Shown: one piece after another, positions 12,905 to 51,100 of the stretch
How the letters are laid out: every line of letters begins with the position of its first letter
Position numbering within the stretch: position 1 is the first letter of the stretch
Assembly: GCF_963676685.1 (NCBI RefSeq)
Contig: NC_092351.1
Span: 25,482,001 to 25,546,000 of the forward strand
DNA from: Mytilus edulis
Lineage: Eukaryota
Length of the DNA: 64,000 nt
Direction of reading: 5' to 3'
Notes under the pieces: generated by a model
Database searches by the model: none
What the model saw: the letters and a program-made list of their open reading frames with translations, nothing else
What the model was told of the DNA's origin: nothing
Translations under genes and position numbers: made by a program

Positions 12905-15900
12905 ATGGTAACTTTGGTAAAGGTGATATCTTATTTCATTGTTTATTAATATTAGAAAGTCCACACCATTTTGTTTTTGATTTGGTATATATTTGTACAA
13001 TATGAATTCATAATCAAATGAACGGTGAGTATTTTATATGCAAATGTACAAAATTTATTTTATTCATTGAACAAAATGTAGAGCATCATTTTTATTCAAT
13101 GGCATTTACAATTACACTTTGAATACATAATGAAAGATGTAATCGCATTGTACGATACAAAACGATACATTTGATGGTGAAGCATTAAACTGAGAAAGGT
13201 ATGCATCTTTTTGTATTTTCATTGCGTAGTAAAGCAGTAACAGTAGAGCAAGCACCTCATAGTTATGCGCATGTCTATCAAATCTATGAAACTGCAAATA
13301 AGTTGATCTCTATATTACACACTATAAGAACTTGTTGCGTCATTGTTATTTAACAATGTGCATAAACTGATCGCACAATTAGTAAAAATAGAAACGGGTA
13401 TTAAAATTGCTTTTTTCTAGATTTATAAAAAGAAGATGTGGTATGATTGCCAATGAGACAACTCTCCACAAGAGACCAAATGACACAGAAATGAACAACT
13501 GTAAGTCACCGTACGGCCCTCGAAAATAAGCAAAGTCCATACCGCATAGTCAGCTATAAAAGGCCCCGAAATGACAATGCAAAACAATTGAAACGAGAAA
13601 ACTAACGGCCTAATTTATGTACAAAATCAACGAAAAAACTTAAACAAACGACAACCACTGAGTAACAGGCTCCTGACTTGTGACAGGCACATACATACAG
13701 AATGTGGCGGGGTTAAACATGTAAGAGGGATCCCAACCCTCCCCCTAAGCCTACTAGGAAGGGTTACCCCTTAATATTTGAAAATAAGGGTTGTGTAAAA
13801 GGTAGACACATCAGGAGCTATATGACAGAAATCCCTAAATCATCTACAGTAAACTTTGTCTGATGTTAAACCTAAATTTCGTACGAATTTGTAAATTCAT
13901 TTGTTATAAATGCATATATATTATATAAAACATATCAAAGTACAGTATATGCCACACGTATACGGTATAGAGTACGATGTATTTTTGTGTCGTCTGGTTG
14001 TTGTGTTTAATACGCAGACAGAAAATGTGTTATTAATCAAACGATTTTGAACCGTCAAACTATCTAATTGGCAGATGGAAGTCACAATCTTTAGAGAATT
14101 GGAAGATTTTCTTGACCCCTTTCTGGACCCACAGAATGGACCTGTTCGTCCGGATAAAATGATGGCAGGCAGGGCATTAATTGCACTAGATGCATTGATC
14201 AAAAACATGCCTGGTGTTACAGAAGACAGGGTAAGTGATATAAAACGATGAAAAACAATTTGAGATTTTAATATGTAGATGAAATGAAAAGCGATTGATG
14301 AAATACTCTAAATGTAAAATTATCTGGATGTTTAGATATATGGAACTATTATTTTACGTTATTATGAACTGCATGCTCTAGTGTGAATTTTACATATGTG
14401 TTAATTTTTAATTTGTTATTACTTCTTGAATGTGTTGATAGACTAATGTGTTCTGACTATCTAAAATAGAATGTTAACGTTTATGAAGACAATATAACAT
14501 GACAAAAGTAGGTATATCCTCAATTCATGTGACAATTCTTATCTATTTCCAACCTGACCATTCATACAGGTGGAATCACTAAAGATCATGTTGCAAGAAG
14601 CAATGAGAGGACGCTGGACATCTATGGACATGAGAATAGATGACGCAGTAGATCAATTTAATGAAATCAAACGAATGGCATTTGATGAGGTAAATTTCAA
14701 GTTTGTTACAATTATGACAAGGGAACTACCATTTATCTTAGTTAAGGTAACAACAAATGGAAGTTTTAACAACCTTGATTGGCTATACAGCCCTTGCACG
14801 GTCGATAGTTAACGTAGATGGGGTGTCTTCCTTCGTGTTGGATTTGGAAACACCAGAAGACAAGGTCTAGATCTTTAATAGAATGTGCTAATTTTTAGAG
14901 TAGTATGTAATTCATGTGTAAGAACTTCCACTTCGATATAGAAAATGACATGTTTTATCATATTTCTGGTTGTATTTTAAATAAAAACAGAAAACTTTTG
15001 TTTAATCAATTTTTTTCCAACTTTGTCACATAAGGGGAGGCAACTCATATTATGCAAGGGCAGATTATGCAGATTAAGGTACTTTTACAATAGAATGTGT
15101 TAAGAATTTACCTATTTTATTATGTAGCGAGGAAAACGGGTCCGGTGATCACATTGTTTCTTTTTCTGTACTGAAAGCATACTATTAAAAAAGAGGGACG
15201 AAAGATACCAAAGGGACAGTCAAACTCATAAATCTAAAACAAACTGACAACGCCATGGCTAAAAATGAAAAAGACAAACAAACAACAGCTATCTTCAACA
15301 AACAACAAGCTATCTTTGCATATGTAATCTCAAAATTCTATGGTGTAGATTACGCTTTATTGCAGAAAATTGGGTTGTCGTCATGCATAATCTATACAAA
15401 ATTTGTCAATTTTGAACACCGTGAAGCGTGAAAATAAGCCCGGTGACTCATTCTGTTTTTTTTTTTTTGTTTTTTTTAAAGCATGATATAAACTACTAAC
15501 ATTTTGGCAAATTATTTGAAAAATCTATGGATTATTTTTAGACACTAAATCTACCTTAGGTGATCTAAGCTAAAATTAGTTAAATCATTTAAACTGATTC
15601 GAAAAGGTTAAACGCCTCCATTGCAAAATAAAAACGCCACAGAAAAAAGGATTATTCAAGATCTTTTTAATGAATTAATACACTCTTGTGTAGTACATCA
15701 TTGGTTTTCATCTTTCTCTTATTTAATACTAAATATAGTGCTGAAGATATATAAACTTCCTTAGTTAAAATACCTGAAACACAAATGACAGATAAGGTAC
15801 TTTTTCTGCATTTTCTACAATTCTGTCATTTCTACAGTTGTTATCTTTATTACAGCGTATATTGCATGACAGTAAACCACAGTATCTATACAGCTCTAAG

Positions 15901-18900
15901 TCCAAATCAGCAAATTATCAAATATCACCTCGACCACAGCCAAAACGACCGGCATATATTGACGGATTCACATTGAAAAATAAACCATCAGATAATGACG
16001 TTTTAAATGCTGAGGGAACCGGAAGTATTCACAATATGAATACGAGGATCAACAGGAACCCGGATGACCCTCTTAATAGAGAGTTTACGTTAGATGTTAT
16101 AAAGTCTAGCACAAAAATACCACCTCCAACAGGGCAGGACCTGGTTAACCGAAATACGCTGATAAAACAAGAGTTCAAAGACATCAAAAGCAGGTAATAT
16201 AAATAAAAAATTGCCTACTCCTTGCGTAGTTATGCTTTTTAAAGCGTGTTCCACTTAAGAAAACAGGTTTTATTTATATAATTTTTTATTTGTTATTTCA
16301 TCCTTTTTAATGTATTTGAACAGATTTCAAATTTACTACAGTTCTAATTTATTGTAAAGTCGAACACAAATTTCCTTGAACAAATTATTTATATGAGACA
16401 CTATCTTAAAGTGGCATTAAAATTTCTTGTCTAGAAATACCTCCAATTGTTATATTTTTTTAGATATCGCGTGTCCATTTTCCAGGTGAATATTCAGAAC
16501 ATGATAAAGAGAGAGGAAAAAATGCATACGTCATTGCAGTACAAGAGGATGGCCCAGAGGGGTAAACTGATCCTGCTACGCTTTTGGCACCTATCGGGTT
16601 ACTCTTGACATTAAACGGTTTTAGATGTGAATTAATGTATCTCAGCATAATTGAAAGTATCATGTAGGGACATCTTCATCCTACTTCTAATCTGACGAAA
16701 TAATAACAATTTTCCAGAAAAAATCAATATGTGCATTGTATTACAGGTATAGTGAACTCCGGATTCCTGCAACGGTCCCAGAAATTTCAACACGTTCCTA
16801 TATTCCATCTCAGGTGCTAACAAACAACCCAACCAAAATTGCTGATCTATTTACAAAACTTTTTGATGTTGAATGGGCTGATGCTTTTGAACAAGTCTGC
16901 AGAAATAGAATCGGAGTACCTGAAGTGAAGATAATTGTTGATTTAGCCGACATATTAAAGGCAAGTAAAGCGTATGTAAAAAAGATATTTATTAGGTTAA
17001 TATGACGTCAAATGTATTTTCAATCTTTTTTTCATTCCTGGCTTATAGTCAATTCCTGCTTTTTGTATTGCAGAAGAAATCTGTTACTGTGTATAAAATT
17101 AAGAATGTGGCATGATTTCCGAAGAGACATCTCTCTTCAAGATACCAAATGATGTAGACGTTAGCTACTTTATGTCACCGTACGACCTTAAACAATGAGG
17201 AAACCACATGCCATGTAGTAAGCTTTTAAGGGCCCCAAAATAACCATTTAAAAAAAATTAAAACGAAAACACTAAAGGCTTTATTTATGTATACACTGTT
17301 TTATGGGTTAATTGTGTCTTTTGGTTGTGTTCGTCATTGATATATATTCCACTTTAGGAGAAGACCGTATAAATGTGCTGTCGATTTTATACACAACTAT
17401 TTGGTACATGATGTGGGAAAAATAACCGTGACAACCAAAAAAAAACACCTTCAAGAAAATAAAATGGTCGATCCTTTCCTTGAATTCACAACCAATGACG
17501 AAGAAAAGAAGATACCTGTAATTGTTCAATTTCGAAAGAAACAAAACACATACTGTGTGTGTTTAATGACATGAAAATGTTGTGCAATGAAATCGTTGAG
17601 TGTTGAAATACATTTAGAAATAACTGCTGCTGTCGTCTCTCTTTCAGAAATCTTTTCAATATACCCGAGAAGAAGCAAGGAATTTGATTGACAGCATGGC
17701 ATTAAGAGTTCACGATACAATGGCTGTACCACCAGGACATACACCTTATACGGTAATTAGTTTTCAACAAAATCACATTTTCTAGTATTATTTACTTTTA
17801 TTGCGACAACTAAACAAAAAATAATGTTCGTAGACAGTATAAATACTGAAATGTGAGTGGGAAATATGTGGTTTATCTCTTGAAGTTTTTGAGTGGTTTT
17901 GTAGCTTTCTCATTGCTATCCCTCAAATTTATTTGTATTAACTTTATAAAAGAAAACATTTAACAACTTTTCCACTATTAAAGAGGGGAGAAATATACCA
18001 GAGGGACATTCGCTCTCATCTGTCGAACATAAACTGACAAAATACACGAAACACAGTATAGAAAATTAAAGACTGAACTGTTTCACTCATTACTAACATG
18101 AGAAATCAAATTCTGAAAGTAGCAATACTATTAGTATGTATTTTGTTTTAATGTTAATTCATTTAACACAGTTCCAAAAGCATACATGCATATAGCATCA
18201 AAACAGGCAAACTTTGAATTAAAAGTATGGTTATTTATTACATTTATAGGTTCGGTTAAAAGAGAGACATCATGATTACACCTTAAAGCGACATGCTAGA
18301 GAAATAGTGAAAGAAACCGCTGATTTAAGTCTTAATATCATAATTAAAGTAAGTTTATCAAATTAGGTGTTGTACCTGCACCAAGTCAGTATAGTAAAAT
18401 AGCAGTTGTTATCAAATAGTCCGTTTTTTTATATGTTGGCTTTTGTTTTGTATGTTGCTATCCAGTGTTCTGCTGTTGGAGGAGAATAAGTTTTGAACAC
18501 CTACTGTATATACAATGTATACATCAAATGTTCAAAGTACTAGTGTTCGAAGGTAAAGACAGAGCAGCGCTAAAACTAATAAACTAATAGTCATTATTAG
18601 TATAAAAAGAATACTAGTAACTAAATTATATATCCAGCATATTTATACAATAGAATATGTTATATAGGGTGTATATAATTAGTGATAATTATGGTAGAGC
18701 GGGCTGCACAGCTATCAAACTAGATATATTTTGCAGTCATTAGCAATATACTGATAAAAAAAAATCACAAAAATACTGAACTCCGATAAAAATTCAAAGC
18801 AGAAACGCCCTAATCAAATGACAAACACATCAGACAAATTGATAACGACCGTCATACGTTGGTAAAGGCATTTTCGTATGTAGAAAAGGATTGAACCTGG

Positions 18901-19684
18901 TTTTATAGCTAGCTATACCTCTAACCTGTATGACAGTCGATTGGAAAAAGGTAAGTGGGTTTAAAAAAAACACTGGCTCTAGGGGAAAATTCACCCATAC
19001 GTGTTACATCATATTTTAAAAATATTTCACTATTAATATATCATTTAATTCAGTCGCGTTATATCTGTTCATTTCCTGATATAAAAAAGCTATATATCAG
19101 AGGAAATAGAAAAAAATGTAAAAAAAAGAATCTTGAGTAAGTGAGTAAGGTCATACGTCCACCTAATTGATTTCTGAGCGTACCATGTCGAGCATCTTTG
19201 TTATATTCTGCAAAGCTTGTTTCCTTCCCATAATTCTAACCAATGAGGATAATGCAATACTTTATTTCTCCTCTATCTTTCATCGAATATTCGTAATAGT
19301 ATAAGGTAAGTGGTTAGAGTAACCAACAGTTTTAACATATGATTTAATCCATACTAAAACTATTTGCAGGACTTTGAGGACAGATATAACCCGCCAAGCT
19401 TTCGACATCATGTAATACAACAATATGATATCGATGAATACCAAAAACTAGACAAAGTAACCAGGTATCTTCAAAAATGTGTCGAGGTAACTTGGTATAT
19501 GAACGTACAGGATCCACCGATGGTACTTCTATGGCCGAACACAAATGAAAATGAAATATCATTAAACTGTTTCAGACATTTTACAAAATTTGGTAACAAA
19601 CTGGAACATGAAGTTTGGCCAGCTCTATTGATACACGATCAGGGTCCTGTAATCGTGAAAGGAGTTGCACAACTGAGATATTAA
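12905..19684 (+). CDS. G3: MIEAP-like protein, ~450 aa
   Basis: Tentative first exon 12905-12922 (MVTLVK; an alternative start is ATG 14075), then 14075-14230, 14570-14689, 15856(or 15838)-16193, 16747-16960 (GC donor), 17648-17752, 18250-18348, 19370-19684. Motifs NPTKIADLFTKLFDVEWADAFE and KCVEVTWYMNVQDPPMVLLWP...VWPALLIHDQGPVIVKGVAQLRY*. Confidence 0.85.
13427..13748 (+). repeat. Repeat family B copy
   Basis: Colinear with ~30110-30450. Confidence 0.8.
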
Positions 19685-20689
19685 ACTCACTTAAATAGAT
19701 TTACTTACTATCAAACTCTTTTGACAATCATTGAGTAAGAAAAATAATAAATGCTGTCAGGTATTGTAAGCAAATTTTAAGCACGAAAACTCTACTGTGT
19801 ATTTACAGAAACGCATGATAAATGATCATATATTGCGCTAAAGATGTTTATTCTAATTATAACTATTTTTATTATGTATCTACTTTACCATGTATGTTGA
19901 CATAATTGTACGTTTATTGTTTAGACTTTGTTTTAATGATTTAAGGAATTAAAGTTCGAATATTGATTGTCATTCCACTGATATGTATCATTACATACAT
20001 CAACATTGTGTTGCAGTATAAAATTATAACCTTGGTATCATTGGTGATTTGTTTCACTTTACCGTCAAATACAATACACACATTGTTGGTATTTGCTGAT
20101 ATCAATTGATATTGAATCAATTGTGATATGTATTGTCGGACAAGATAGAAATTGTCTACAAAGGGTGGTCAGATATTTTCCTTGATATTGACACATACGT
20201 TTGACGTCAAACTGTAACATAAAAAAGACGTGATGAATTAAACATTTTACACTTGCCAACTTCCCTTTTATAATCAGTTATATTCAATCAGTTTAATCTT
20301 ATATAATCGTATACATGTTTATATTTCTATTAAAACGGTACGCTCTTGAATGTTCACACTATACTACGGACTTCGATATCAGAACTGTGCTGCTGGTTCT
20401 TTTCTGCTTTAACAGAGCTCTGACGAAAAAGTAAAATATCAAAAATACTGAATTCCGAGAAAAATTCAATCGTAAAGTCCCCAATCAAATGGCAAAATCA
20501 AATGACAAAACACATCACACAAATGGACAACAACTGTCCTATTCCTGACTTGATACAGACATGTCCAAGTATAGAAAATGGTGGATTGAACCTGGTTTTA
20601 TAGCGCTAAACCTCACTCTTGTACGACAGTCGCATCAATTTCCATTATATTGACATGAACAGAATGTCACAAATAGGGGTACAAAAACA

Positions 20690-21784: not shown

Positions 21785-22082
21785 ACAAGAATGTGTCCCC
21801 AGTACACGAATGCCCCACTCGCACTATCATTTTCGATGTTCAGTGGACCCCATAAAATTGGGGTAAAACTCTAATATGGCGTTAAAACTAGAAAGATCAT
21901 ATCATAGGGAACATGTGTACTAAGTTTCAACTTGATTTGACTTCAAGTTTATCAAAAACTACCTTGACAAAAAACTTTAACCTGAAGAGGGACAAACGGA
22001 CGAACGAACGAACGAATGGACGAACGAACGGACGCACAGACCAGAAAACATAATGCCCATCTACTATCGTAGGTGGGGCATA
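21785..22082 (-). mobile_element. Non-autonomous Helentron/HINE-like element
   Basis: Reverse-complement copy with atgcccc/ggggcat subterminal inverted repeats and (GAAC)n microsatellite. Confidence 0.72.
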
Positions 22083-22989: not shown

Positions 22990-25900
22990 ATGATCGAGCC
23001 GACACACCAGGTATGTAAATATTTTATTTGAATCCCATCCTTGGGTTCACAACATTTCTTCATAAATAACAATAGATTTTTTATAGATAAGTTTTATAAT
23101 TGAATTAAAAAAATTGAAGAATTCTTATACCTTGAATTTATAAAAGTAAAATACCCACTAGTTAAGTTCAAATATCTCATTTTATGGATTGAGGATCAAG
23201 AATGAAAAATGAAAGTATTTAATGAAGAAACCTACACATATAAAAGGAGAATCAACTCTTTTACTTGTAAATTACGTGCATGCAGTGTATAATATGGTTA
23301 TGAAACAAGTATAAAAAAAAGAACTTCAAGGTAAATTCAAAAAGAGGAAGTCTATTTAAACATTGAAAAAATCAGACACTTTCAACCAATGGAACGAGTG
23401 GAGCGAGTAGAAAACAATTTTAAACTGATAGATTATAAGTTTTCACTCAATATTTTTCAAATTTGAATGTCACTATATGAATAACTATACTTATCTTTGC
23501 AGGCATTTCAGGATATTCAAAAACTTGACAATTTTTTAACAAAATGCAATCTCCTCTTTGAAGATCCCTATGTAGAGGAACACCCGTCACATAATGATGC
23601 TGTTGTTGCTAGAAGGAGTATTTCTTATGTTGACGAATTCTTTAGACAAAGAGGTTTTATTAATGTATGTTTAATTATAATAATCCCTGTTAGCGATGTT
23701 TTTTGTAAAAGCGCTGATCAGTGAATTACAAGTTATAATTGTTTTTGCAACTCATCATGCTAAAACGGACAATGCTTCATAACATATACGAAACATGGAA
23801 CAATGGTGAGCTTTAATATTCGAACATTTTGACGGCTATGCAAATTTTGTCTATTAAATTCACTGTTAAAAAAACAATGTCCATGCTTTTTTCTACAATA
23901 ATTTATTCCCATAATTGTGTCTTACAATTTTTAGTTTTGCTTTGATATATTATCATATGCATACTTTCCCAAATAGGGCATTTGATTTCTTACTATAAGA
24001 ACATATACGTAACAACTATGAAACTGCTTCGAAAATTCTGTTTTTTTGTTTTCTTATTTTTTGTACATATTATCTTAAGAATAAATGAAATTCTAAATAA
24101 TATATATCTAATAAATATAGAAAATATCATGATTATTCACAGGTACAGTCTAAATGGTTACGTGAAGTTACCAATGTTGCTGAAGGAGAAGATTGGAGTA
24201 GGGTATCAAGATACATCAAAGATGCTAATAATGAATTTATGGGATTCAATCGAGTGTATTCTGATATCGTATGTATACTTTAACACACTGTCTACATCTA
24301 GATAAACCAAACAATATTATTTATATCAAGTAATAAAGTGACATTTTCAAACGGTTAACTACATTATTGTAACATGGTAATCTTACCTTTATTGTTTCGC
24401 CAAATGTTTAGCTTGTGCTAAGTCTTTTTCTAACTATTCGAATCATTTATTTATGAACTTTCTAACAACCATTAGTTTACGATTGAAAATTGCTATCAAA
24501 TTCAAAAAACTCTTAAATTTTATATTAATAGTAATTACAAAATCTGTACATGCATAAGAATTTCGATTCAGATGCGGCAAGTTGAAAAGGAAGCTTCTTA
24601 TTCAAAACTGACAAATCAGCAAAACGGAAAACAAGAAAATCAACTTGACACTAGGCTAAGCAAGATTGACGAAGCACCGTCAAGGTTGACCGACGAGACA
24701 AGATATATGTCGCCACAAATGGTACAGTATGTAAAAACGACACATAATGACAGAAAAAACTATAACAGATCACAAAGTGGTGCCAATGAGACACATACAA
24801 GACAACAAGAGACACCAGACGTGTATGCCTCGCATTCCCATAGAAAGGAACATTATGCAGGAAACCAACAAAGGGTTATGGACGAAGAACTCAGATCACA
24901 GCTTCGTCTTGCTTTAGATAAATTGGAGGATTCAAACACAGAGGAAACCACTTTGAAGGACCCAGAAGTAATTGCATCTGAAAGGCTGGAACAAGAAGAA
25001 GAATTTAAACGGTATTTGAAGAATTGCGCATTTCTGTTTTGTTAGACAGGCGTTTTATAATATTTTCATAATACGAAGAGAAATCTGTAACGAAAAATAA
25101 AGTAACATCGCTTGTTATTTCAAGTGATTTATTATTCTATTTTCATTAATAATTACAGCTTATGTAACATTCATCATGATTGAATAAAATATCATATAAA
25201 AATTCATGTACATTTGAGATGACGTATGAATATTTTAAAAGCTTGATTTCAACTTCATTCATACGAAAAATCAGTACAAAAAAGAATATATTCAATACGT
25301 TACTATTAATTGTGTCGTTAAAAATGAAGAAAAGGAAAGTTAAATGCATTATGAAATTGTATTTATTTTACATTTTGTGTTTAATAATTTAGATCTGTCA
25401 AAATTTTAGACGTGGCGAACAAGCAAGCAAAGCTCTACATGACAACAACCCAAATATCACTGATCTCAGCGATATAAATAGACCTAGTAAGATAGCAGAA
25501 AGATTCAGCAATTTGTATGACGATCTGTGGACGGATGCATGCGAGGAGCTTACTAAATTCTACAGACAAGAACATCATTCAGAGAGAATCTGTATTCTTG
25601 ATTTGGCTACTATACTTAAGGTAAAATGAAATAATCTTTAAATTATCTTATTTGCCTTTGTTCTATTATTATTATTATTTTTACTGTTTGCTCTGTTTTT
25701 GGTAATATCCATTTGACGTAACTCGGTACTTATGCATCAGGTCAATATGTTGTTTGTAATATCTTTCATTTTTGCTGGTGTGCTTTGTACGTGTTACTTT
25801 TTGTGTTTCTTTGTTACATATATCGTGGCTCTGTACTTTTAAACATCCCGCCATTATGTTATTGTTTTATTATTATTTTGAAAAAACTTCGAACGACAAA

Positions 25901-34600: not shown

Positions 34601-37600
34601 GGATATGAAATAGTTATTTTGGGTAGGAAATGGCAGAGAAACGAAATGGTTATGGTACGAAATTACTTTCAACCTAACGACACAAATACATCTTAAGATT
34701 CACAGGATGTTTTCAATAATAGATAAGCGATATCTGAAATGTAATGAATAAATTTTACATTACCATCACTGATATGCAAGCAATATCAAATGCACTAGAT
34801 GACAAAAGGCAACCACTTGGGAATATCCTTAGTAATCTTGTTCAGATACATAGCAATTAGTAATGTATTTATTCATTTTTTTATCGATATTATTAAAACA
34901 GATGATAAAAATGCATGCCAATATATAATCATACCTCTCCCTTTCATCCTTTTGACGCCATTCGGTTACTTTACTAATTTCTTTGGGTTTAATGGATGTT
35001 GGTGTCACAGTAGGCGGAGTTTCAAATCCATTAAAACTATGCATATCTGCCTGAAAATAAAATGAAATAACTGTTAGTTATGTGTCCCAAGAAAATATAA
35101 AAAAAAACAATTTATCACAATTATGAGTTACGTAGAATATGAACCACATGCACTCAGCTTGACTAAACCCTTTATTGTTATAAACCATGTCGGGTATGTT
35201 ATAGATGACTCTACAGATAGGTTTTGCCCATAATTGAATGCAAAATGACCTTTAAATAAAGGCAACAGTATTTTACCGCTGTTCACAAGTCATAAATCGA
35301 CCAAGAAAAATCAAATCCGGGTAACAAACTAAAACCAAGGAAAACACATCAATTATTTGATTACATCCACGTAATTTGGACAAGGAATGATCGTTCTCAC
35401 TGGCAAGCATGCCAAATTCCTTACTTGACATTGGTAATAAATATATGTAAATCCGTTCTCTTACGTCGCTAGTATTCTGATATGTTGTTATTCTTTGTAT
35501 GCTTTAAAATAGTGATTTCCCACCGTTTCCTGTGTGTTTAATAAATATGTAAATAACGAATACCCGTCTAATAAAGTTACTTCTTGCTATCAAGAATTCT
35601 TCTAGCGCCTTATTGCTGTATTTATGAATACCGGGAATATCGTTCTTTCTGGCGTTTGTAAGAACTTCAAGTACAGATGGCACCTGAAATGAGTAATGCA
35701 AAGTAAGTCCTGTGATAATTAAATATAAAAACAATTTAAAGAAGAAACATAAATAATATAAGTACAAAAATATGAATTGACTACAAAAGTGGCTGATATC
35801 TAGTTTATAGTAGTATGTCTTTTTTTACAAAATGCTACACAATGTCAAATTTTGTTGTATTGGGTAGATTTTCAGCATTTGCATATTTCAAAGCGATTTA
35901 AAATCATGGTAAATTGACATGATACATGATGTTTGTCTGTTGAAGTACTTCCCGACAACTTTAAACTATTTGTACGTGCTGTGTAGTAAATTTTCCACAT
36001 TTGCCATAAAACTCTATTTTACATTAGTTGTGTGTCGTTTCGATATTTCATCAACCATTCGTATCCATGAAGTCAATAAAACAACTGTTATTGAGTCGAT
36101 AAAAATCAACCTCAGTTTTGTGTACCGGTATTTTTTCAATGTGCAGTATGTAGTTCTATTACCGTTTTTTTTCTTTACACGTTTAAGTATCATTTATTTT
36201 TCGATACTTACATCGTCACAAGTAATTTCTTGGACATTGTCTAGAAGAAAAACAAGTTCGTCCCGAATATTTTTTGCCATTTCTGGTGTTGGCAAACTTG
36301 GCGGATTTGGTCTCTTCAGTTTCTCACATTGTTCTAAGAAATGTTCTAACCGGATAAAAGCTAGATTTATCTGAAAATTTTAATTAAGTCGTAAAAATTT
36401 GATCAAAGAGAGAAACCTACTCATCTCTGAATAAGTATAAAATTCATACGACATATTAAAAGACTATAAATGTGTGTCCACTACACCGGGCAGTACAAGC
36501 TGCTGGGGAATGTCTTAATTGACACGATCACCAAACATGTCTGCATGAGAGGCCTAATTTGTTTGATGCAACATTATATTCATTAAGTGAAACATTCTTA
36601 TTTCCCTTGTCTTTACAAGTAGAAGGAATGTTTAAATTCAAGACAAGAATTGAGAAATAGTTTCACATGTGTATTTACCGTCTAGACATTTATATTCACC
36701 AAAAGGGTTAACAGTAAGTCAAAGCTTGCATGTAAGGTATCATCAAGAATAAAATGAAATACAGAAAACTCTAAAGATTCATTAACAACAATAAAAAGTA
36801 AAATCACAAAAATACTGATCTCAGAGGAAAATCTTATCGGAAAGTTCATTATCACATGGCAAAATCAAATGACAAAACACATCAAAAACGAATGGACAAG
36901 AACTGTCATATTCCTGACTTGGTACAGGCATTTTCAAATGTAGAAAATGGTGGATTAAACCTGGTTTTAAAGCGTTAAACCTCTCACTTTGATGACAGTC
37001 TCATCTAATTCCGTTATATTTACAATGATGCGTAAACTAAACAGACATAATAAATAAAATAGTCAAAATATGGGTACAGCAACAATTTTAAAAGGAACAA
37101 TTTAACAGAACACAAAAACATCTATCTACAAACACATGCATTGATTCGCGTGTCTGACGTCAGAAAATTTTATACGTCACATATATTTGTCGTTCAAGGT
37201 ATATACAAAAAAAAATTAATTTCACATGGGCAATGTTAGCATACAGAGTTAAAAAATCAAAAGTATGTAAGAATTAATTTCAGAAATAGACCGAGATTTA
37301 AAATACTCCAAAAGTTATATAGAATTTATAAGAATCCACAAATAGTTCATTCCACTACGCGATGAAATGAAATGAAACTATGAAACATGTACTTTTGATA
37401 ACCCATGTCTATTATTGAGGGTAAACTGAAGATTTTGCTTTATGAAGTGACCCAATTGTTTTAGTGATATTTATGAGTTTGACTGTCCCTCTGGTATCTT
37501 TCGTCCCTCTTTTAGATAATTCGAATTTATTTTTTAAAATTTATATCTATATCCTTCAAGATATTAGTATAATCATTTAATAACAAGTCAAATCAAATCA

Positions 37601-37709
37601 AATCGTGTAAAATGACGAAACTGATAATGTTTACATTTCCTATTCCTATTGATAGTTATAGTTATCAATAATTTAACAAAATATATTAACATACCTTACG
37701 TCTATCCAT
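31700..37709 (-). CDS. G5: MIEAP-like protein, ~371 aa, 8 coding exons, inverted relative to the cluster
   Basis: Minus-strand exons 37709-37695 (MDRRK), 36370-36212, 35683-35564, 35050-34935, 33820-33625, 33400-33278, 32630-32526, 31981-31700 (1116 nt). Motifs NNPNITDLSDMNRPTKVAEKFNILYDNQWTDAFEDL and KCLQIAWFMNVQDPPMSLLWP...VWPALLLTSDGPMMTKGVAQFK*. Confidence 0.9.
32866..33101 (+). mobile_element. Family A terminal fragment
   Basis: Reverse complement of ~5014-5250 (gcacgacgggtgcc...tttcgtccctctttt). Lies in a G5 intron. Confidence 0.75.
36793..37370 (+). repeat. Interspersed repeat family C (aaaagtaaaatcacaaaaatactgaac...), longest copy
   Basis: Other copies at ~10985-11092(-), 11848-12045, 18758-18940, 20428-20652, 26118-26350(-), 48760-48935(-). 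Confidence 0.8.
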
Positions 37710-38297
37710 TTCCCTCAAAGATTATTGACTCGATTGAAAAAATTGGAACATATCCATATGTTCATTGGTAAAAGTTGTGAACATATAACATTTGTTTCGT
37801 TTGAAAGTATGTCAACCTTGCTTAAATTTATGCTTTATGCAAACAAAATTAACTTATCACCTAAAACAATTAGCTACATGTATAAAGATTCGTTTGTATT
37901 TCATTTCATATATTCACATTTTCAATTCGATAATTAGCCTCCCAATGTGTATACAAGAAAAATACATGTTTTTACTCTAAAATAGTAAATTAGATTATTC
38001 TTTATCTATAAATAGAATTAGTTTGTTTCATCGAATTGTTAAATGATACATTATACATGTACAATCAAATGTTTATTTTTTATTCTTTAAGTAGGAAATT
38101 TAATAACATATCTTATTAAAAAAGTATTGTTCCATATAAGTGATTTGCATAATTCATTGTTTAAATATACAGATAATTGGTTTCACATTTAAATGATTAT
38201 ACTAAACAAGGTTTTCACCTTCAAATGGTAAATAAACGAAAATGTATTACAATTCAAAACAACTTTAGATTTATAGGGAGATAATTACAAATTCATT
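37710..38297. promoter_or_regulatory. Candidate bidirectional promoter between G5 and G6
   Basis: Predicted start codons diverge 588 bp apart; the spacer is very AT-rich and has no recognisable repeats. Confidence 0.45.
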
Positions 38298-41200
38298 ATG
38301 GAAGAAGATACTGTAGAAGATGAAGAAGACAGGAAATTCCAACAGGTACGTATAGTTATGAAAACACCGCAGTTATGAAAACATGGTTGTTTTATTCTGA
38401 TTTTAAACTTATCATCTAGGGATATAAAGGGTGTCGGATGAGATGCCGAACATTAAACTCCTTATATTCAATATTCAATTTAAACTTGTCGAGCATTTAA
38501 TGAAATAAAATTGTGTAATATGACATAAATTATATAACACTTAAAACACTGCTTCCAATTTTTTTTATTTTCCTTTTCAGCATTGCATGTTCTTAATGTC
38601 AGTGACATTTTTTTCATTACTTGCTTACTTATGATTAGTCCTTGGTATGCTATTTGGCACATAAGGCAAGGACAAGTTTCCTCCATTCTTCTCTGTTGTT
38701 TGCTTTTCTGTCCATTGTTCCCCAGGTATATCCTCTTTCCTTATTATTCATTTTCTATAGTGCATCTCCATGTGGTTTTTGGTCTTCCTCTTTTCACTTT
38801 TCCTTTTGGTGTCCATCTAAGTGCCACCTTGGTCATGTCTTCAGATGGTTTGCGTATACCATGACGGAGCCATCTCCATCTCTTTTGTAGCGACAAATTC
38901 TCCATGTCCTTGGTGTTTGTAGTCCAATATAGTTCTTGTTGTTGCGTATTTATTTGGCCAGACTACTTTCATTATCTTCATCAGACACACATGTGTTATG
39001 GAAGCTGACGAATCTTTTTGTATCTTTCTCAGTCATTCTCAAGCACTCTGAGCCATATAGGAGTACAGAGAATACACAACTGTATATAGTCTTAGCTTGG
39101 TTTTCTTTGTAAAGGCTGTTGCTTTCCAGATGTGGCCTAACCTAATTAATGTTGTTTTTTATTATTATTCATTTATTTGCAGCTAGAGGAGGAGTTTTGC
39201 AATTTAGAAACTTTTCTTCGGAAGTGTAAAAAACTTCTTAGATCGAAGATAACATATAAAATGTATCCAACCAAAACAGAAACAGAGGGCGCCATATCAA
39301 GTCTACAAACAATAATTAGTACCGATGAAGAAATAGAAAATGATGTATGTGGACTACATGGTTTCGTACACTNNNNNNNNNNNNNNNNNNNNNNNNNNNN
39401 NNNNNNNNNNNNNNNNNNNNNNNNNNNNNNNNNNNNNNNNNNNNNNNNNNNNNNNNNNNNNNNNNNNNNNNNNNNNNNNNNNNNNNNNNNNNNNNNNNNN
39501 NNNNNNNNNNNNNNNNNNNNNNNNNNNNNNNNNNNNNNNNNNNNNNNNNNNNNNNNNNNNNNNNNNNNNNNNNNNNNNNNNNNNNNNNNNNNNNNNNNNN
39601 NNNNNNNNNNNNNNNNNNNNNNNNNNNNNNNNNNNNNNCGGATGAAAGAACGAAAGAAAGATATTTTTACTTTGTTTCAAGTAATCTGATTATAATCCCA
39701 TGAAGTTAGATACTGAGGAATACTTTAATTATCTTTTTACAGGTTAAACTGGTACCTGAATTTCTGGGATTAGTGCTGAACAGAAAATGGAAACAAGTGA
39801 AGAAAACTGTTTTATCTGTCTGTATGGAGTTAGATGCTGCAGAGTGTAAATATCTTAAAGTATGTCAGTTTATACAAACATTATTTCGCATGTCGATCAT
39901 ATTTTATTCCTTATGTATTAAATAAGAGGTGAAACTAATAAATTTGAATAAATAAAGATGTAATTTGATTGATACACTCTTGGTTAGTTTATGTAATATA
40001 TAAAAATATTATGATATATTCCAGAGAGATACAGTAGAGTCCAAGTTGAACAAACCATCAAGTATAGAGCTTGCGAATTTTGATGTTTGGAAGGAGTCTG
40101 CATTATTACGATTTGGGTGAGAACTTTAATCTTTTTGTCTGATTCAGATTATGTACAGTATACGGTCTTGGCGATACTTACTTTAGTTTGATTCCATAAT
40201 CTGATACACTAGAATATCACATTACGGTTTCACAAATTTGTCTTAACACCTTTAATTGCTACTACAGTATCAGGCTGATCCAATGCATTTCAGGTATTTA
40301 ATCGTACTTTGCAGTCAGGCAATTATAACTGTATCTAATGAAATGTTTTCTTTAGAATGATAAATGAGCGCCTAAAAACTTGTATGATATACATGCACGA
40401 TAAACTTACGTTATTTACTGAAAGTAACTTTGTGAATATTTTCACCACTGCTTTCAGTATAGAACCTGAAGAAGTCTTGAAATACGACACTGAACTTGCG
40501 GAAGAATGCATTGATGAATCTTTACCTACACAAATGGCGAAACAATTTTGTGTTATTTACGACGTTAACTGGTCAGAAGCCTTCATTCAAGCGAAACAAC
40601 ATTTCGTCGACGACAAGGAAGACGAAGAAATAATAAAAGATATAGCAACACTAACACAGGTATAAATAAATCAAATTTACCAGAAATAAATTATTTTTTA
40701 CACTACTGGTTAATGCAAATATTAATCTTGTTATGTTTTTTTCCATGAATTTTTTCTCCTTTTTGCTTACAATTTTCCTTATACACATTATGAAATATCT
40801 TTCATGTCTGAATCTTATAATTTAAAGGGAACACACAAGATAATAGCCAAGTGGACTTAAATTAAATGGAAAATTACTTTTGTCCAAAATTTTTCCTATC
40901 AATTTTAATATTGCCAGTAAAACGACTTTGTAAACGAACCAAATTATAAAAATGTAAGATAATATACATTGTGTCAACATAATATGTAATCCTACCTTTA
41001 CAATATCTCTTTTTTGCAGCTTGTATTTGACTATTTTAAGATTAAGGTAACGAATCAGGTAAAACAAATGACAACTGTCATGACAAAAATAGTCACAGAA
41101 CCAATCATCGTCAAGCAGAAGTCCAGTAGAACACCTGCATCTGTAAGTTGTAGTTGGTATGTTATTATTTCTGCATATGACGTAGGTAGCAAAACATATA

Positions 41201-42883: not shown

Positions 42884-43645
42884 TTACGAATTACGAATGA
42901 CTAGTCATGTAAAAGCTCGTATACACTAATGAGGTCGTAAATATTTCATTTCCGTCGTCGTAACTTACGTTGCGCAGTGAGTGATTGGAAATGACGTGTA
43001 GATGAATAATAAAAGTAAAAACAAATAATTGAACAAATTTTTATATTTATTCATGGCATCAATTGTACCAATTCAGAAGGAAGTGAGATTTTTTTCCTTA
43101 AATTATCCAGGCAATTTTAACAAAATATGGTTCATAAGAAACATAGATTTGTAGTTCAACATTTTATATAAACAATATATGAGTAGGAAAAGACAATAAG
43201 TGGGTGAGCTAAATCTGCAAATAAAAACAACCCCATGACCAAACGAAAACAAGAGACCAACTACAATAAAAAAAAACTCGGCACACAGATAATAAGATTG
43301 AGTAATACAAACCCAACATAAACCCGGGTTGAAATTGCGTGCTCCGGTGGAATCATCAGCTTCTGTTGCAATAGTCATATCCGTCTTAATATCTTATTTT
43401 GTTAAAATCTTTTGATGTAACTAATTAAGTGATAAGGAAACGCAAAATCAAGGATTGGCAATTATCACTTGTTTAACAATAAAATATTAACAACTGCATC
43501 AACCATCTCCATGTGTAAACTTTTCAATTCAAATACACAAAGTTCTAAAAAAAAATGAAAACACAGTGTTATGGCAACTGACAGTGATGACCGTTTAAAA
43601 AAACACAACATTATATTTTAAAATTGTTTAAATTCTCATAATTAT

Positions 43646-43669
43646 GGGGGGGGGGGGGGGGGGGGGGGG
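43646..43669 (+). repeat. Poly-G tract (24 nt)
   Basis: Homopolymer seen directly in the sequence. Confidence 0.9.
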
Positions 43670-44289
43670 ATCCGATGAGTAAAATCGTAGATGTCGGTTT
43701 CGCAAGAACATATTTGACTAATTATGTACAATCTGATGTTCTTTTATAATACACAATTGTTGATGGATGTCTACAACGTAAACGTTATTCATGAAATAAC
43801 ATATTAACACAAATTGAATAAATTTGCCTAGATGGTCTTCTTAATTTTTATTTGTTATTATGATGCCATATATGTGGTCTGTATTGTTCATATACAAATC
43901 TTTCTTGAGAAGTTTAAAACTTTAATCTTGGCTTGTATATAGTGTCACACATATTTTCAAAATATTGAAAGTGTTAGTGATGTACTGCTGGTATTAAGGT
44001 AACACGATACCGAATGACGTTACGCCATGAGTTATCGTTCCTGACGTTATCGAATAACGTTCACACATATAAGCCAATGCAGCGGGTTTTGTGTAGCATT
44101 TTTAACGGTAAATTTCCCTAGATGCAGAGTGCCGAGAGTTTTGATGCAATACGTAGCGGTTATTTGACATAGATTGTTTTATCGTTTTCCGGCAATCATT
44201 CTACTCATTGTTAATCTTTAAAAAGTAATAATTTACTTTTTAAATATTCTGTTTCTTTGATATTTAAGCATCTGCACGCTTTATCTATA

Positions 44290-45191
44290 CAAGTACACAC
44301 CCGTGATATCGCTGGTCCGTAACTGAATTGAAGTATACAACTATGCCTAAGCCTTATTTTAGTAATTGGTATTGTCATCTGATAAAGTCATGTCGATTAT
44401 ATTAAGATACACAGTTTTCTCTGCTTTCAAATCTTTCTGTTTGAACCCGTCGACCTGGAACTTGTCAATTATTGGTAATATTAATTATTTGGAAAACAAA
44501 AGGTCCTGGCTATCCAGGAATGGAGTATGTTTTAATCAACATCATTGTCCCATATTAGTTATCTTAGAAAGTCTTGCTGATTACTGAATAAAACTACAAT
44601 AGGGAAAAATTTGACAAAGATTTGAATTTAGTAGTGTCGGCCCTTTGATTATGACCCGTGTATATAGCAAAATCCTAAATACACCGTTTGGTGGTGCGCC
44701 TGTCAAATGCGGAACGTACCCTTTGATTATGACCCGTGTATATAGCAAAATCCTGAATACACCGTTTGGTGGTGCGCCTGTCAAATGCGGAACGTACCCT
44801 TTGATTATGACCCGTGTATATAACAAAATCCTGAATACACCGTTTGGTGGTGCGCCTGTCAAATGCGGAACGTACCCTTTGATTATGACCCGTGTATATA
44901 GCAAAATCCTAAATACACCGTTTGGTGGTGCGCCTGTCAAATGCGGAACGTACAGATAAGGTAATAGGTAACAGGTGAATATATATTATTGGTATCGATA
45001 TCGGATTCGACCCGGAACTTGTTAATTATTGGCAATATTAATTATGTGGAAAACAAAAGGGTCTGGAGTGGTGTAATTTTTAATCTACACCATTGTCCTA
45101 TATTAGCTATATATAGAGTTGAATTCTTTGATTTGTCGTTTTTACCCGATGACGGCTGACAAATTGGATATCGTAATTTTAGTATTATAGA
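44290..45191 (-). mobile_element. Non-autonomous Helitron
   Basis: Minus strand starts A|TCTATAATACTAAAA at 45191 and ends with a GC-rich imperfect hairpin (ccagcgatatcacggg) plus tgtgtaCTTG|T at 44290. Inserted in an AT dinucleotide with no TSD. Confidence 0.68.
44641..44952. repeat. Minisatellite, 4 x 78 bp
   Basis: Units start at 44641, 44719, 44797 and 44875; nearly identical, with no spacers. Diverged ~100-bp direct repeats lie on either side (~44457-44560 and ~45014-45110). Confidence 0.95.
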
Positions 45192-45859
45192 TATGTTCTT
45201 ATGCATAACAGGCACAGTTTTATCACTTTATTTTTATTCTTGGGATAGATATAGGAAGATGTGGTGTGAGTGCCAATGAGACAACTCTCCATCCAAATAA
45301 CAATTTATAAAAGCAAACCTTGGTTTATTTTTGCAATAAGTACTTAGTCATGATTCACGCCGTATCCTCATGAAATTTTGTTTTGAAAGTAGAAACCTAA
45401 TTCATAGAAGCTTAGGATGATGTGTGTAAAAAACGGGGAATTTTACAACTATTAATTCGTTTTAAAATGGTCATCAAAAACACCGCTCGGACAAAATTGA
45501 AATTTATTTGGATGAGAATACGGATATAATTAGGGGGAAAAGCACAATACAAGCAGACGTTGAAAATCATACAGAAAATAGTTTGTTTGTATGGAATGAA
45601 AAAAAGTGGTTATTTAGCCGAATAACTTTTCCTGTGTTCCATGTGTAAACAGTCTCTGAAATTCATTGGTCTGTACAGAGTAAATTCGATATAGTTTTGG
45701 AAATATTTTAAAATACAGTGCCAGCTTTGTAATCGTATAAACCACGTCTACTCAGGACGGACAGCAACATCGGAATGAAGCATTAGAAAGTTAACGAAGG
45801 CTGAGAAATACATGGGCACTTGATTCGGCAGAAATAAAATAACAAAATTCAGGTTCCGT

Positions 45860-45942
45860 TACAGTCTGAATAAAGCCAGCCCCGAGTATCCACTTGCGTC
45901 TACAAACGCAAGTTGATAGTTGGGGCTGGCTGTAGTCAGACC
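45860..45942. mobile_element. 83-bp palindromic mini-element flanked by 8-bp direct repeat GGTTCCGT
   Basis: gtctga..agccagcccc..acttgcgt/ctacaa/acgcaagt..ggggctggct..tcagac; GGTTCCGT at 45852-45859 and 45943-45950. Confidence 0.65.
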
Positions 45943-48193
45943 GGTTCCGTGTTCCCTGATTCCGTTATAATTTTTTTCTCGAAATTTACATGCAAACGGC
46001 TGACTTTTTATTATTCAAACGGCAAGAGACTGTAAAAAAGCTAGATCTTGAAATCATTTAGATTTTATATTCGTGTTAATATACGCTTGCATTGGTATTC
46101 GGTGTTTTTTTAGTTTTGAGTTGGAAATAATGTACATGTACAAGTTGGGAGACAAAACGACCGAAAGAAAATTAACAAAGTTCACTTTTAGGGCTCTGAG
46201 GGCCATATTGCTCGCATAATAGGCGTCGGAAAATGCCCGGAAAGTTTCTTTCTTAAAATTAGTTTTTAGAACAAGTATAAGTATATATATACATGTATAG
46301 CGTCAGTTTAAATTTTCCCGACCATCATCGCGGATGCCCTGCCTCTATTGCAAAACCTACCTATTGTATTTATTGTTAACTTGTTCTCGTCCTGAACATG
46401 CATGAACTATTTTCCACTGGACGTTAACCAACCAATAATCAAAGCAATCAATCCTACAATTTACCCCCGTCACTTGAAACTATAGTTGTTAAAATTTAAA
46501 TCATTGCCTCTAATTTTTTTCAAAAAATTCGACAAAGTTTAAACGCAGACCGCGAGGAAGACCAAAATTGAACAGTTACGCAAAACTAAATATCTACGTT
46601 ACCGCTTGCTCATTTTGGAAGTAGTGTAACATGAGACTTTATTTGTAAAAGTACAAGTACAAATAAAAAAAAATTGTGTACATGTACATGTTATTTGTAC
46701 AAAAGTTGGCTGATAGAATGATAAATGGAGATATGTGATATGCAATTTATAAGATAGCAACAGCTGGGCATTAATTAACTGACATCAACACCTTGAAGAC
46801 ATCAAGAAAATCGTGACTAATGCTTATTGGAATAGTATCTTTACACTTTTTATTTGTAGTTTTAGTAAACGTTGGAAAATTTTGAGTATGTGTAGTATAA
46901 TTGTCACAGTAACATTTCAGTCTCTTGGTAGAACAAAGATATTATTTAAATAATTTTATTTCAAATATTTACGTGAATTTAACGTGTACAAAATTCCGGT
47001 GATTTATGCATGAACTATTATCATAAGATTCACATGGAACCTGTTCACGCAAGTTTCAAGTCATGATATGCTCGTTTGATGTGAAAATCGGACGATATTG
47101 ATAGTAATTCATATGAGTGAAATTCCATGTGCAGGACGAAATAAAATTATATCTGATTCAGTAGAATTTTATATTGCATTACTAGGAACTTTACGACAGT
47201 CGACAGGGGAAATGAAATAAAATATACTCATTCAGATCCCGACACATATTTTTTCTCCATTTCTCTGAGAAGGAATAACGTTATATTCCGTACACCATAA
47301 CGTCACACGTTTTTGGTCAAATTCTAGGCCTATCGATCAACTTTGAAGCCATTTATTTCAAAAACAAGGATGGTGACATATGAGTTTCTATACGTGTATG
47401 GATTCACTATGCAATCCTGGATATTATGTTAGTTTTTTGTTTTTCTCCGTATATAAGAAAATAGCCATCCATTCGAAAATCTAAAAAGGTAAGCCGAAAA
47501 AAAGGCATTTCCCCTATATACCTAAGTAAATTTGTCGCCAAAATTGACGTTTTCCTATGAAAATTACAAAAAAACAAAAATGGTGACCCCCATTTATTAT
47601 TTCATATTCCGATGTAACTCGATTCAAAGTACACGTATGCCAAAAATTTTGGAAATCGGGAGATATGCCATTCGGTATCGTGTTACCTTAACAGAGTTAT
47701 AAACTCATCGTATACAACAGGATTAAAATTGTGTACGCTGTCTGCGCGTTTCGTCTTCTAGAGGCGTTAAAATGGCCAAAACGAATTGAAGTGCCCTGAG
47801 GACCCACACTTTTGAATGATTTTGCAATATACAGCGTATAATGTAATCCCAACATCAAATTACATATACATAAGGTAGAATAGTTTAGGGTTTTGACATG
47901 CTTAATTTTTAATTTAGTTTAACATTATAATGATGAAAACAATTTTCAAAACAAAACAATTTACCGATTCACCTTTAGAGTCCGCTATGCACAAACGGAT
48001 AGACGGGTTTTATATATTTGGTACTTATATTGTTACTGCAAATCTGTTAAATACCATCCTTTATTATATTTGCTTGATTAATCAAAAGATAACATGTATT
48101 TGAATAGCTGTTAACGACAGATTAAATCCATTCGTGTTTCAAACGGAGGTTGTGTTTAAGTATCAGTTAAAGAAGGAATTAGAAATCACAATA

Positions 48194-51100
48194 ATGTCAA
48201 AGGTAAGTCGACATGTAAATAATAATTGTTAATGGTTTCATAATCAAGATTTTTTGGGTGTTTTCAAAGTTGATAAATTTGCAATATTTTCACCTTTTAG
48301 AATGAAATAATCTAGTACAAAATCAGTATTTGATACACTTAAATTTCGAATTATTGTCTGAAATTGTCATTCTTTGTTATGAAAAGAATTCGATTAATTG
48401 AAATATGTTGGTCATAATTAAACCTACGTATAAACAATATACATTTAGATGCTTAACATTTTTAGTACTGTTAAAATGGTATATATGATGAGTAACGATA
48501 CTTAAGTAGAAGTAGTTGAGGTTTGAGTGGTGTTGCTTGCTTAGCTACATAAGGAGCAGCCGATCTCATTGTAAATGATAAGTTAATGACAAAAACACTC
48601 AGCAAAACGTTCTTCAGTTGTAAAAAAAAATCTTAAGCGTGCTGTATCTAATTCTATGGGATCATTAGATGTTGCCTCCAAACCTTATATCAATAAGGGG
48701 CGAGCATGATAGATATTGGACACTGCTTTCAAGTTCAGAAAGTAACTTTTGTTTGACATTCGTTTGATGTGTTTGAGCTTTTGATTTTGCGATTTGATAA
48801 GCTTTCCTTCTTGAATTTTCGTCAGAGTTCAGTATTTTTGTGATTTTACTTTTTGTTATCCATTCGTTTGGTGTGTTTGAGATTTAGATTTTGCCATTTG
48901 ATTAGGGACTTTCCGGTTGATTTTTCATCGGAGCTAGGTGTTTAAGTATATTTTTTTTTCCAAAAAGTGTGGCGACTTTTATTTTCCTGTTCCAGTAATG
49001 AATGTCTTAGCAGCAGCTTTGTGCCGATTTTTCAATATACCTTTTACTTTTACGACACATGGTGAAGTTCGTTTTACATTTTCGACATGTTATAATGTTT
49101 ATTGCTTTTTGTTCGAAGTAATATTAAAAGTATCACTGTGGCTTGAGAAAATGGTTAACAATTAAATAGCTGGTTAATTGTTTTCTTAAATGCTGGTGAG
49201 GTTCCAGGATTAATATACTGAATATGTGTACCTTTAATATGACATTCACTTTTCATTTTGCAATTTTAGTTACAGTTTTCCTTCTCAGTCCTGGACAGAT
49301 TTATTCACGATGTTCAGAAACCGGTTGCACATCCAACCTCTGGCGATGCTAAAAGGGCTTCCTCTGCGATTGACGACATCATAAATAATGTTCCACTGAT
49401 CGATGAATTAAATGTAAGATTAAATTACTTAATTTCTTTATTGAGCATTGTCAAGTAAAATTTACAAACAAATAAGTTAAACAAAGCATGAAACAAAATT
49501 TAAATATGCTACCATTAAGTAAAGAGAAGAAAAAAATGCTATTCAGTTAATATGAATTAAAAAGAATAAGTCAGCATGAATTAATATGTTCTCCTGGGCT
49601 GGAAACAATAATGATCTTATCCTTTTTTTTTAATGCCAGTCTGTCGAAATTTTACCATTGTTGGTTATGCTGCGTGAATCTCCGGAAAAAATAGTTTGAC
49701 ATGTTTCCAAATAGTTTGTAAAATAAATGTACCAAAACTCAAAGAAATTTCTTAAAATCTAAAGCCCAAAGAATCTTTGAATTACAAAAATATATTTCAA
49801 ACATGTATTGATACAACAAAATGTATGTCTGATTTTAATTTGGTACAAACACATATGATAGACAGAACATATATTGCACCCATTTTTGGATTTAAAGGGA
49901 TATAAAAAATGTTCCAAGCGATCTTACAAATCCTAGTCACTATGGCATTTTTATATGACTAAAAAACATCAATCAATTCAACAATCAATTCAACCCTCAT
50001 GACGCTTCACATTAACTTTATCAATAAAATTTAATATTTCAAAGGTGAAAGGCTTACGAGATCTTATCAAACTTGCAGAAAAGGGAAAGTTCACAGACAT
50101 GAAAAACAAAGCCAGTGAAGCTATTTCTGATTACCAGATAATTGAATCATTTTATAAGAAAAAGGTTCGTTTGTAGATTACAATGTTGTATTTCGCTAGT
50201 TTTTTTATGGAAAGTAGTACATGTAGATATTTTATAACGCAAAACAATACATTATACGATTTTTTTCAATCAAACGCATGTTGTTTGTCAATGTGTATTG
50301 TGATTTTAAATTAGTATTGAGACACTAAATTGTTATATGCAGACATTTAACAGACCTGCGCCTTTCCCCTAACTGTCGTTCTACATATATGATGAATGCA
50401 ATCAACATAGAGAAAAGATATTCTGTAATAAATGTGGTTGGATTTCCTTTACCTCCTGATTAGGCGCGGGTCTGCTAAATGTCTGCATATAACAATATGT
50501 AGCGACACGTCTATTAACCAAAGCACCACAGGACAAGAAAAATCAACTACAGTTCACCACACGACCTGCAAAAAAAACCCAATACATCATGCCGTTGAAT
50601 ACGCTATTGAAGGCTCCGAAAATCAAAAAGTCAATCAACTGATGAAATTAACGAAAAACAATTATGACAGGCGGCAAAAAACAACAACTACTGGACAACA
50701 GGCTCTTCCATTGAATGCAAAATGCTCTTACTAGCCGGGATTTTCTCCTTAGTTAAATGATTATATCAAAATACTACTAGTATTGTGTAAGTTTTTTAAC
50801 AAACACATATGTGTTTCTTTTGTTGTATAATGTGATTCAGAAACATATCCAGTAATTAAAAATAAATATTAGGGTATAATGAATGTTTTGTATTTTATGA
50901 TCAGAATAGAAAAACAACATTTAATTTTCATAAAGGATTTTGCAGGTTTTACCCACATCGGAAAGTATAGATTCAAATGATAAGGAAAAGCAACCAAAGT
51001 TGAAAGAGGTTACAGATTCATTGTAAGTGAATGTACCTCGTCTTTCATGTAGTATCAAAATAGTTTAGTTGATCGGAAACAAATGAACGGAAAAATTGTT

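Follow-up and report, generated by a model that had tools for sequence, protein, structure and literature searches.

What kind of module do five neighbouring mussel genes carry in front of their MIEAP-like domain, and is it a domain at all? The question is raised by a window of 64,000 nucleotides (nt), C8:25482001-25546000 of the 1.37-Gb Mytilus edulis genome, in which an all-against-all comparison of the open frames yields two exon families of seven members each, marking out MIEAP-like genes G1-G8 in tandem, with the last-exon family matching Pfam PF16026. The segment in question is found at the N-terminus of G3-G7. The explanation that we favour, and in which as a whole we place moderate confidence, is the following. 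Namely, G3-G7 would represent a subclade of this mussel MIEAP/SPATA18-like gene array, and their proteins would consist of 0-16 residues from exon 1, a bundle of ~90 residues, a disordered linker and, finally, the C-terminal MIEAP domain. The bundle would be of the up-down type, soluble and independently folding, with helices 1-2 coming from exon 2 and helices 3-4 from exon 3, and it would act as a protein-docking or targeting head, choosing the partner or the site for the MIEAP domain of each paralogue. What is more, it would work as a cassette, in the sense that a duplicate of the promoter, the 5' untranslated region (5'UTR) exon and exons 2 and 3 of G3 would have been placed in an HSPA12-like gene.

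Setting exon boundaries by AG/GT sites and reading phase, we find that the segment is encoded in each of G3-G7 by two phase-0 exons, e2 and e3, just as the preliminary description of this DNA had proposed, and that these are flanked by AG and GT and in phase 0 at both ends in all cases; all of the peptides quoted there are present in the window in the order given, including VKGLRDLIKLAEKGKF, which belongs to G7 (50045-50092). The two exons, of 46-54 and 39-42 codons, respectively, lie near the start codon and together encode a domain of 86-96 amino acids (aa). The e3 exons of G4 and G6, which had not been listed before, can now be placed (Table 1): both start with Val right after a polypyrimidine tract and CAG, and both have GTATGT at their 3' end. 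Note that the alignment tool prints M where the first codon is GTG, which is an artefact of the tool. As far as splicing is concerned, transcript-like contigs of three runs contain the G3 joints from exon 1 through to exon 5 (e1>e2, e2>e3, e3>e4 and e4>e5), and the e2-e3 junction is found exactly as predicted in database proteins of the G5 type (P0001 and P0014), the G6 type (P0004), the G4 type (P0017) and the G3 type (P0005). The G5- and G6-type proteins are RefSeq or UniRef entries from M. galloprovincialis, M. californianus and M. coruscus, and the G4- and G3-type proteins are transcript-derived; the exons of G5 are nearly identical to a RefSeq protein of M. galloprovincialis. Exon 1 of G3, which ends at 13024, has no in-frame ATG and is non-coding, and the G3 protein therefore starts with the bundle; short first exons contribute 5 residues in G5 and 16 in G6. 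The assembly gap in intron 2 of G6 begins 28 nt past the e2 donor (GTATGT at 39345), and 104 nt separate its end from the e3 acceptor (39742). In P0004, the M. californianus orthologue, the residues of e2 and e3 are contiguous, and the gap is therefore intronic and interrupts no G6 coding sequence.

Are the N-terminal domains of the five genes truly related to each other? Their identity between paralogues is 15-44%, as compared with 36-54% for the MIEAP part. When one gene at a time is left out of a hidden Markov model (HMM), the left-out e2 ranks first among 2,906 window fragments in five of five cases, with scores of 9-15 bits, and the left-out e3 does so in two of five. An HMM built without G7 picks up G7-type fragments with an E value of ~1e-5, and hhalign comparisons between paralogue groups give collinear alignments with P between 1.7e-5 (G4-G5) and 0.18. 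In addition, profiles of the five genes recover a sixth locus, with both exons, from the entire genome (E values of 3.9e-13 and 4.3e-9). Because of these tests, and because the position, size and phase of the exons are conserved as well, the homology of the N-terminal domains across G3-G7 is secure. The weak echo of the domain once noted in G2 did not survive, its hhalign probability being 0.9%. One could still argue that there is no domain here, just a leader, helical or disordered, with chance likenesses, or else a fragment of coiled coil, since pairwise identity is as low as 15-44% and e3 often fails when left out. We consider this extremely improbable, and the present results contradict it: the number, phase, size and position of the exons are all conserved, e2 comes first in every leave-one-out test, the sixth copy is recovered genome-wide, the bundle stays 73-95% identical among orthologues while the linker drifts, and a compact bundle is predicted with confidence for the G3-type protein.

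What does the domain look like, and does it belong to a known family? Searches were carried out with single exons or database proteins as queries, and structures were predicted for P0005 (G3 type) and P0001 (G5 type). In the G3-type AlphaFold2 model, DSSP assigns helices to residues 2-17, 28-44, 54-65 and 68-96, with a predicted local distance difference test score (pLDDT) of 84-96, and the G5-type model shows the same four-helix pattern. Both match only up-down four-helix bundles, the best matches spanning residues 1-98 and 2-97, and the domain is thus itself predicted to be a four-helix up-down bundle, in agreement with the helical, roughly four-helix fold suggested at the outset. The motifs of its conserved hydrophobic core are [FI]xxL[ED]xF[LI], a Pro-capped helix 2, VxS[LV]...L..A and A..[EQD][FY], and its net charge varies by paralogue from -7 to +2. 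The predicted surface differs between paralogues, and the version of each paralogue is near-constant across species.

The preliminary description could assign the domain to no known family, and our searches lead to the same conclusion. When all N-terminal exons and the full-length proteins are scanned against Pfam, PF16026 is the only match, a profile search of PDB sequences with the N-terminal domain gives none, and Foldseek searches of PDB and BFVD return best E values of only 0.26 and 0.27. The ESM Atlas offers unnamed clusters only for the domain. Among 1.84e9 representative proteins, the e2 profile finds Mytilus-type sequences only, besides two spurious repeat matches (P0010 and P0011), and a word-based search with the G5 N-terminus (P0001 residues 1-100) returns orthologues only. 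The suggested kinship with MLKL/HeLo/RPW8-type bundles or with MIT domains could not be substantiated, as neither appears in the top 50 of either Foldseek or either VIA search or gives a Pfam match. That said, a weak match to MLKL/HeLo/RPW8 may exist.

It had also been claimed that the N-terminal domain diverges faster than the C-terminus. This is true only between paralogues, as the identities given above illustrate; between orthologues, the domain holds up at least as well as the MIEAP part, and identity amounts to 95/94/73% in the N-terminal domain, 93/89/58% in the MIEAP part and 65/73/44% in the linker. The high identity between orthologues argues for purifying selection on the domain. 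As regards its distribution, the domain is absent from 71 MIEAP proteins of other bivalve orders, whose N-termini form a medley that includes a transmembrane (TM) helix plus coiled coil, long coiled coils and disordered leaders. In the M. edulis genome, six copies of it contrast with 68 or more MIEAP last exons, most of which are on C8. In a tree of last exons, the five MIEAP genes with the domain are set apart from the others by one branch (support 84/86), which recurs in 82% of bootstrap trees, and G4 and G5, sisters on this tree, are also the best hhalign pair of N-terminal domains. For this reason, bundle and MIEAP domain seem to have been passed on jointly ever since a single origin or a single retention. 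The domain is probably a lineage-specific module with a common fold, confined to a single Mytilus-type MIEAP subclade.

The sixth copy lies 11 Mb away, on the minus strand at C8:14349937-14351204, and its amino acid identity to G3 is 92% in e2, 72% in e3 and ~83% over the bundle. Window positions 12713-14720 match C8:14350577-14352267 at ~80%, and the similarity stops 31 nt past the e3 donor; the duplicated block of ~2 kb comprises the upstream region, 5'UTR exon, e2, intron 2 and e3 of G3, together with 31 nt of its intron 3. The alignment of the two blocks is broken by a transposable element found in the window copy only (13427-13750), which was either acquired later than the duplication or has disappeared from the copy. 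The exons of the sixth copy are 89% identical to those of G3, and its introns 81.5% (Fisher p 0.004); its sole exon indel is one of 3 nt, in frame, and its splice sites are all intact. The stronger conservation of exons than of introns, together with the in-frame indel, points to selection on the sixth copy.

The putative first ATPase exon of an Hsp70/HSPA12-like gene lies 374 nt downstream, in phase, and, just like e2 and e3 of the sixth copy, it is AG/GT-flanked and in phase 0. It begins VPNRIVAAIDFGTTYSGYAY. In the Atlas, 23 of the 30 nearest named clusters carry PF00012, and Pfam and PDB sequence scans of this single 99-aa exon give no match; the HSPA12 label comes from the motifs AIDFGTTYSGYA and WVITVPAIW, which we take to be typical of that family. 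At least 150 paralogous exons in the genome share the start boundary of this exon, and nucleotide similarity to the nearest Hsp70-like paralogue starts only there. A second ATPase exon, 26 kb downstream, is 74% identical to the nearest paralogue, the same value as for the first, and a comparison of ~7 kb downstream of the sixth copy with MIEAP exons gave no match. All this is suggestive of exon shuffling, in which a duplicate of the 5' cassette of G3 would have landed in intron 1 of an HSPA12-like gene. From the phase and the splice sites, we infer that the sixth copy would be spliced to the Hsp70-like exon.

Adjoining the chimeric locus is a cluster of four HSPA12-like paralogues (C8:14396071-14487510), whose first ATPase exon is 53-74% identical; the intron between the first two ATPase exons is ~1-7 kb long in those clustered paralogues where both exons were found, as against 26 kb in the chimeric gene. 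On C11 (43505930-43507897), an HSPA12-like first ATPase exon (350-aa open frame) is located ~1.1 kb upstream of a 333-aa frame with a full-length MIEAP domain on the same strand, a possible HSPA12-MIEAP pair or fusion.

Would our conclusions be different if the bundle were simply the N-terminus of Mieap? In G3-G7, the C-terminal part belongs to PF16026, with the last exon of G3 reaching 47.4 bits (gathering cut-off 27), and among database proteins P0004 scores 32.4 bits over residues 163-374 and P0017 60.1 bits over residues 269-476. The N-terminal domain is wholly outside the matched range, and the Pfam model itself covers only the C-terminal domain of Mieap/SPATA18. The bundle could, accordingly, be a fast-diverged version of the ancestral N-terminus of canonical Mieap/SPATA18, kept here and lost or replaced in most other bivalve paralogues, an alternative that we find rather unlikely, yet one to be taken seriously. 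The e2 profile matches no SPATA18 among the 1.84e9 proteins, in a search of low power, given that the paralogues themselves score just 9-15 bits. Over its N-terminal ~90 residues, human SPATA18 appears to have comparable motifs in the same order, which we presume to be a lead and not a test. The architectures also run in parallel, with the ~90-aa bundle, disordered linker and MIEAP domain corresponding to the layout of human Mieap, where an N-terminal stretch is followed by intrinsically disordered regions and two coiled coils at 92-311, and then by a structured C-terminal half (PMC10845071). The other bivalve MIEAP N-termini, on the other hand, are unrelated to the bundle and heterogeneous.

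The best PF16026 score of the genome (99 bits, last exon) is found at C4:83767100-83807099, in a gene that resembles the canonical SPATA18 orthologue; a helical open frame of 409 aa, possibly part of the same gene, is located ~8.5 kb ahead of its coiled-coil exon. Against the descent of the bundle from SPATA18, nothing resembling e2 or e3 occurs in the 40 kb that precede the last exon of this gene, and the 409-aa frame within these 40 kb fails to align with the domain (hhalign probability 0.2%). Still, such negative checks are weak. A word-based search with the MIEAP domain of P0026 returns 71 bivalve proteins and zero vertebrate ones, and none of the searches yielded a SPATA18 from outside the bivalves.

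If the bundle is a module in its own right, as we think, what might it do? A docking or targeting head appears preferable to a catalytic or structural part of the MIEAP domain because the core is conserved, the surfaces are paralogue-specific, the N-terminus is free on a flexible tether and the module has been reused on an unrelated catalytic body. Several points weigh against this picture. In particular, the similarity of e3 between paralogues is weak, with three of five failing the leave-one-out test, the G5-type bundle has a pLDDT of only 51-69, the alignments behind both models are shallow, and the fold matches are generic and uninformative when it comes to partners. One can also imagine a lipid- or membrane-binding amphipathic bundle of the perilipin/apolipoprotein type, which would open on membranes or droplets and act together with a lipid-binding MIEAP domain. 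We hold this to be very unlikely: although the helices are moderately amphipathic (hydrophobic moment, muH, 0.17-0.46), mean hydrophobicity is ~0, the net charge of most paralogues is acidic and a hydrophobic segment is missing, while the structural matches of the perilipin/apolipoprotein type are tied with dozens of unrelated bundles. Human Mieap has indeed been proposed to bind cardiolipin-related lipids, but the same proposal places lipid binding in the C-terminal half and not at the N-terminus, the N-terminal half facing the aqueous phase and contacting client enzymes (PMC10845071). By analogy, a similar division of labour is plausible in G3-G7. Taken together, the bundle is best seen as a probable docking module that is portable, and hardly as a machine of a novel type.

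A more specific idea is that the bundle self-associates. If so, the G3 MIEAP protein and the Hsp70/HSPA12-like protein from C8:14.35 Mb would meet through their N-termini, given that the bundles they share are ~83% identical, and would be joined in one complex; we regard this as unlikely. If true, however, self-association would provide a physical link between two gene families whose expansions in bivalves went hand in hand, and it would suggest that HSPA12 chaperones have MIEAP-domain proteins as co-factors or clients. Namely, the MIEAP-domain family has expanded in bivalves together with Hsp70, and MIEAP-domain and HSPA12 genes are among the most expanded ones (PMC8382680). A folded, selectively maintained N-terminal module that sets one subclade apart would give one a handle on the differences between paralogues. 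What is new here is the corrected set of exons for five genes, the placing of the assembly gap in an intron, the evidence of purifying selection and the cassette copy ahead of an Hsp70-like gene, which would record a clean exon-shuffling event, with a module moved onto that gene. Considering that the fold is common and the family narrow, the wider significance is moderate unless the coupling between MIEAP and HSPA12 is real.

Table 1. Exons of the N-terminal domain and associated features in the window (e2 and e3, second and third exons; n>m, splice joint in transcript contigs)
Feature	Position	Strand	Details
G3 e2	14075..14230	+	52 codons, ATG first; predicted helices 1-2; AG/GT, phase 0; joints 13024>14075, 14230>14570
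G3 e3	14570..14689	+	40 codons; predicted helices 3-4; joints 14230>14570, 14689>15856; joined to e2 in P0005
G3 linker exon	15856..16193	+	predicted disordered; joints 14689>15856, 16193>16747; P0005 counterpart pLDDT ~46-61
G3 last exon	19358..19681	+	C-terminal half of MIEAP domain; PF16026 E 2.9e-12, 47.4 bits, profile positions 107-193
G4 e2	23503..23664	+	54 codons; same segment in P0002 and P0017
G4 e3	24143..24268	+	42 codons; acceptor ttcacag, donor GTATGT; rank 1 when left out of HMM; orthologous segment directly after e2 in P0017
G5 e3	35564..35683	-	40 codons; 1 residue different from P0001 residues 59-98
G5 e2	36212..36370	-	53 codons; identical to P0001 residues 6-58
G5 exon 1, coding part	37695..37709	-	MDRRK, then gtatgt; start of P0001
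G6 exon 1, coding part	38298..38345	+	16 codons, then gtacgt; start of P0004
G6 e2	39183..39344	+	54 codons; P0004 residues 17-70
Assembly gap, G6 intron 2	39373..39638		no residues between e2 and e3 in P0004
G6 e3	39743..39859	+	39 codons; acceptor tttttacag, donor GTATGT; P0004 residues 71-109
G7 e2	49276..49413	+	46 codons; G7-type fragments are P0008, P0009 and P0012
G7 e3	50045..50164	+	40 codons; rank 1 when left out of HMM

Several other features of the window deserve a mention. G5 (minus strand) and G6 (plus strand) stand head to head at 37695-38345, with 589 nt between their start codons, and may share a bidirectional promoter. The introns of G3 contain interspersed repeats (13427-13750; also 15130-15330 and 11550-12140) that have many copies in the genome and a very high depth of transcript contigs. 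At 44581-44959 there are ~4 tandem copies of a 78-nt unit, open on both strands (26-aa units). Outside the window, a short predicted database protein from another assembly, P0007 (113 aa), contains a G6-like piece of e2, PTKSETEGAISSLDNLTVMCSS, three times in tandem.

How does the predicted bundle compare with known systems? Generic up-down bundles, such as cytochrome b562/BRIL, CheA P1/HPt, talin-rod and TLNRD1, BRIC1 and designed ones, are 3-18% identical to the mussel domain, with Z scores within the range deemed uninformative for helical bundles. A haem ligand pattern is absent from the mussel domain in the alignments. HPt/CheA P1 domains have a phospho-accepting His on the exposed face of helix 2, and the alignments show that a helix-2 His is not conserved across the mussel paralogues. 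The MLKL/HeLo/RPW8 and MIT proteins resemble G3-G7 in having a small N-terminal helical bundle on a different C-terminal domain. The MIT domain, however, is a three-helix bundle that binds MIM motifs, whereas the mussel model has four helices and gives no Pfam MIT match.

Closer to home, G3-G7 are similar to Mieap/SPATA18 in that they, too, consist of an N-terminal part, a disordered region and a structured C-terminal half, and differ from it in that the mussel linker is short and without the two long coiled coils. Other bivalve MIEAP paralogues likewise combine the MIEAP domain with varied N-terminal modules, be it a TM helix plus coiled coil, long coiled coils or a B-box/TRIM-like motif plus coiled coil. 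None of the long MIEAP open frames found on C2 and C5 contains the bundle, all being fusions of the B-box/coiled-coil or another kind. One of them, at C2:459xxxx on the minus strand, is an uninterrupted open frame of more than 715 aa in which a complete MIEAP domain is joined to a B-box-like Cys/His motif and a long coiled coil, a TRIM-like fusion, and a second, similar copy lies 4.6 kb away. Compared with all of these, the module of G3-G7 is a predicted compact bundle and not a coiled coil, is limited to a single subclade of Mytilus type and, in addition, occurs as a copy ahead of an Hsp70-like gene.

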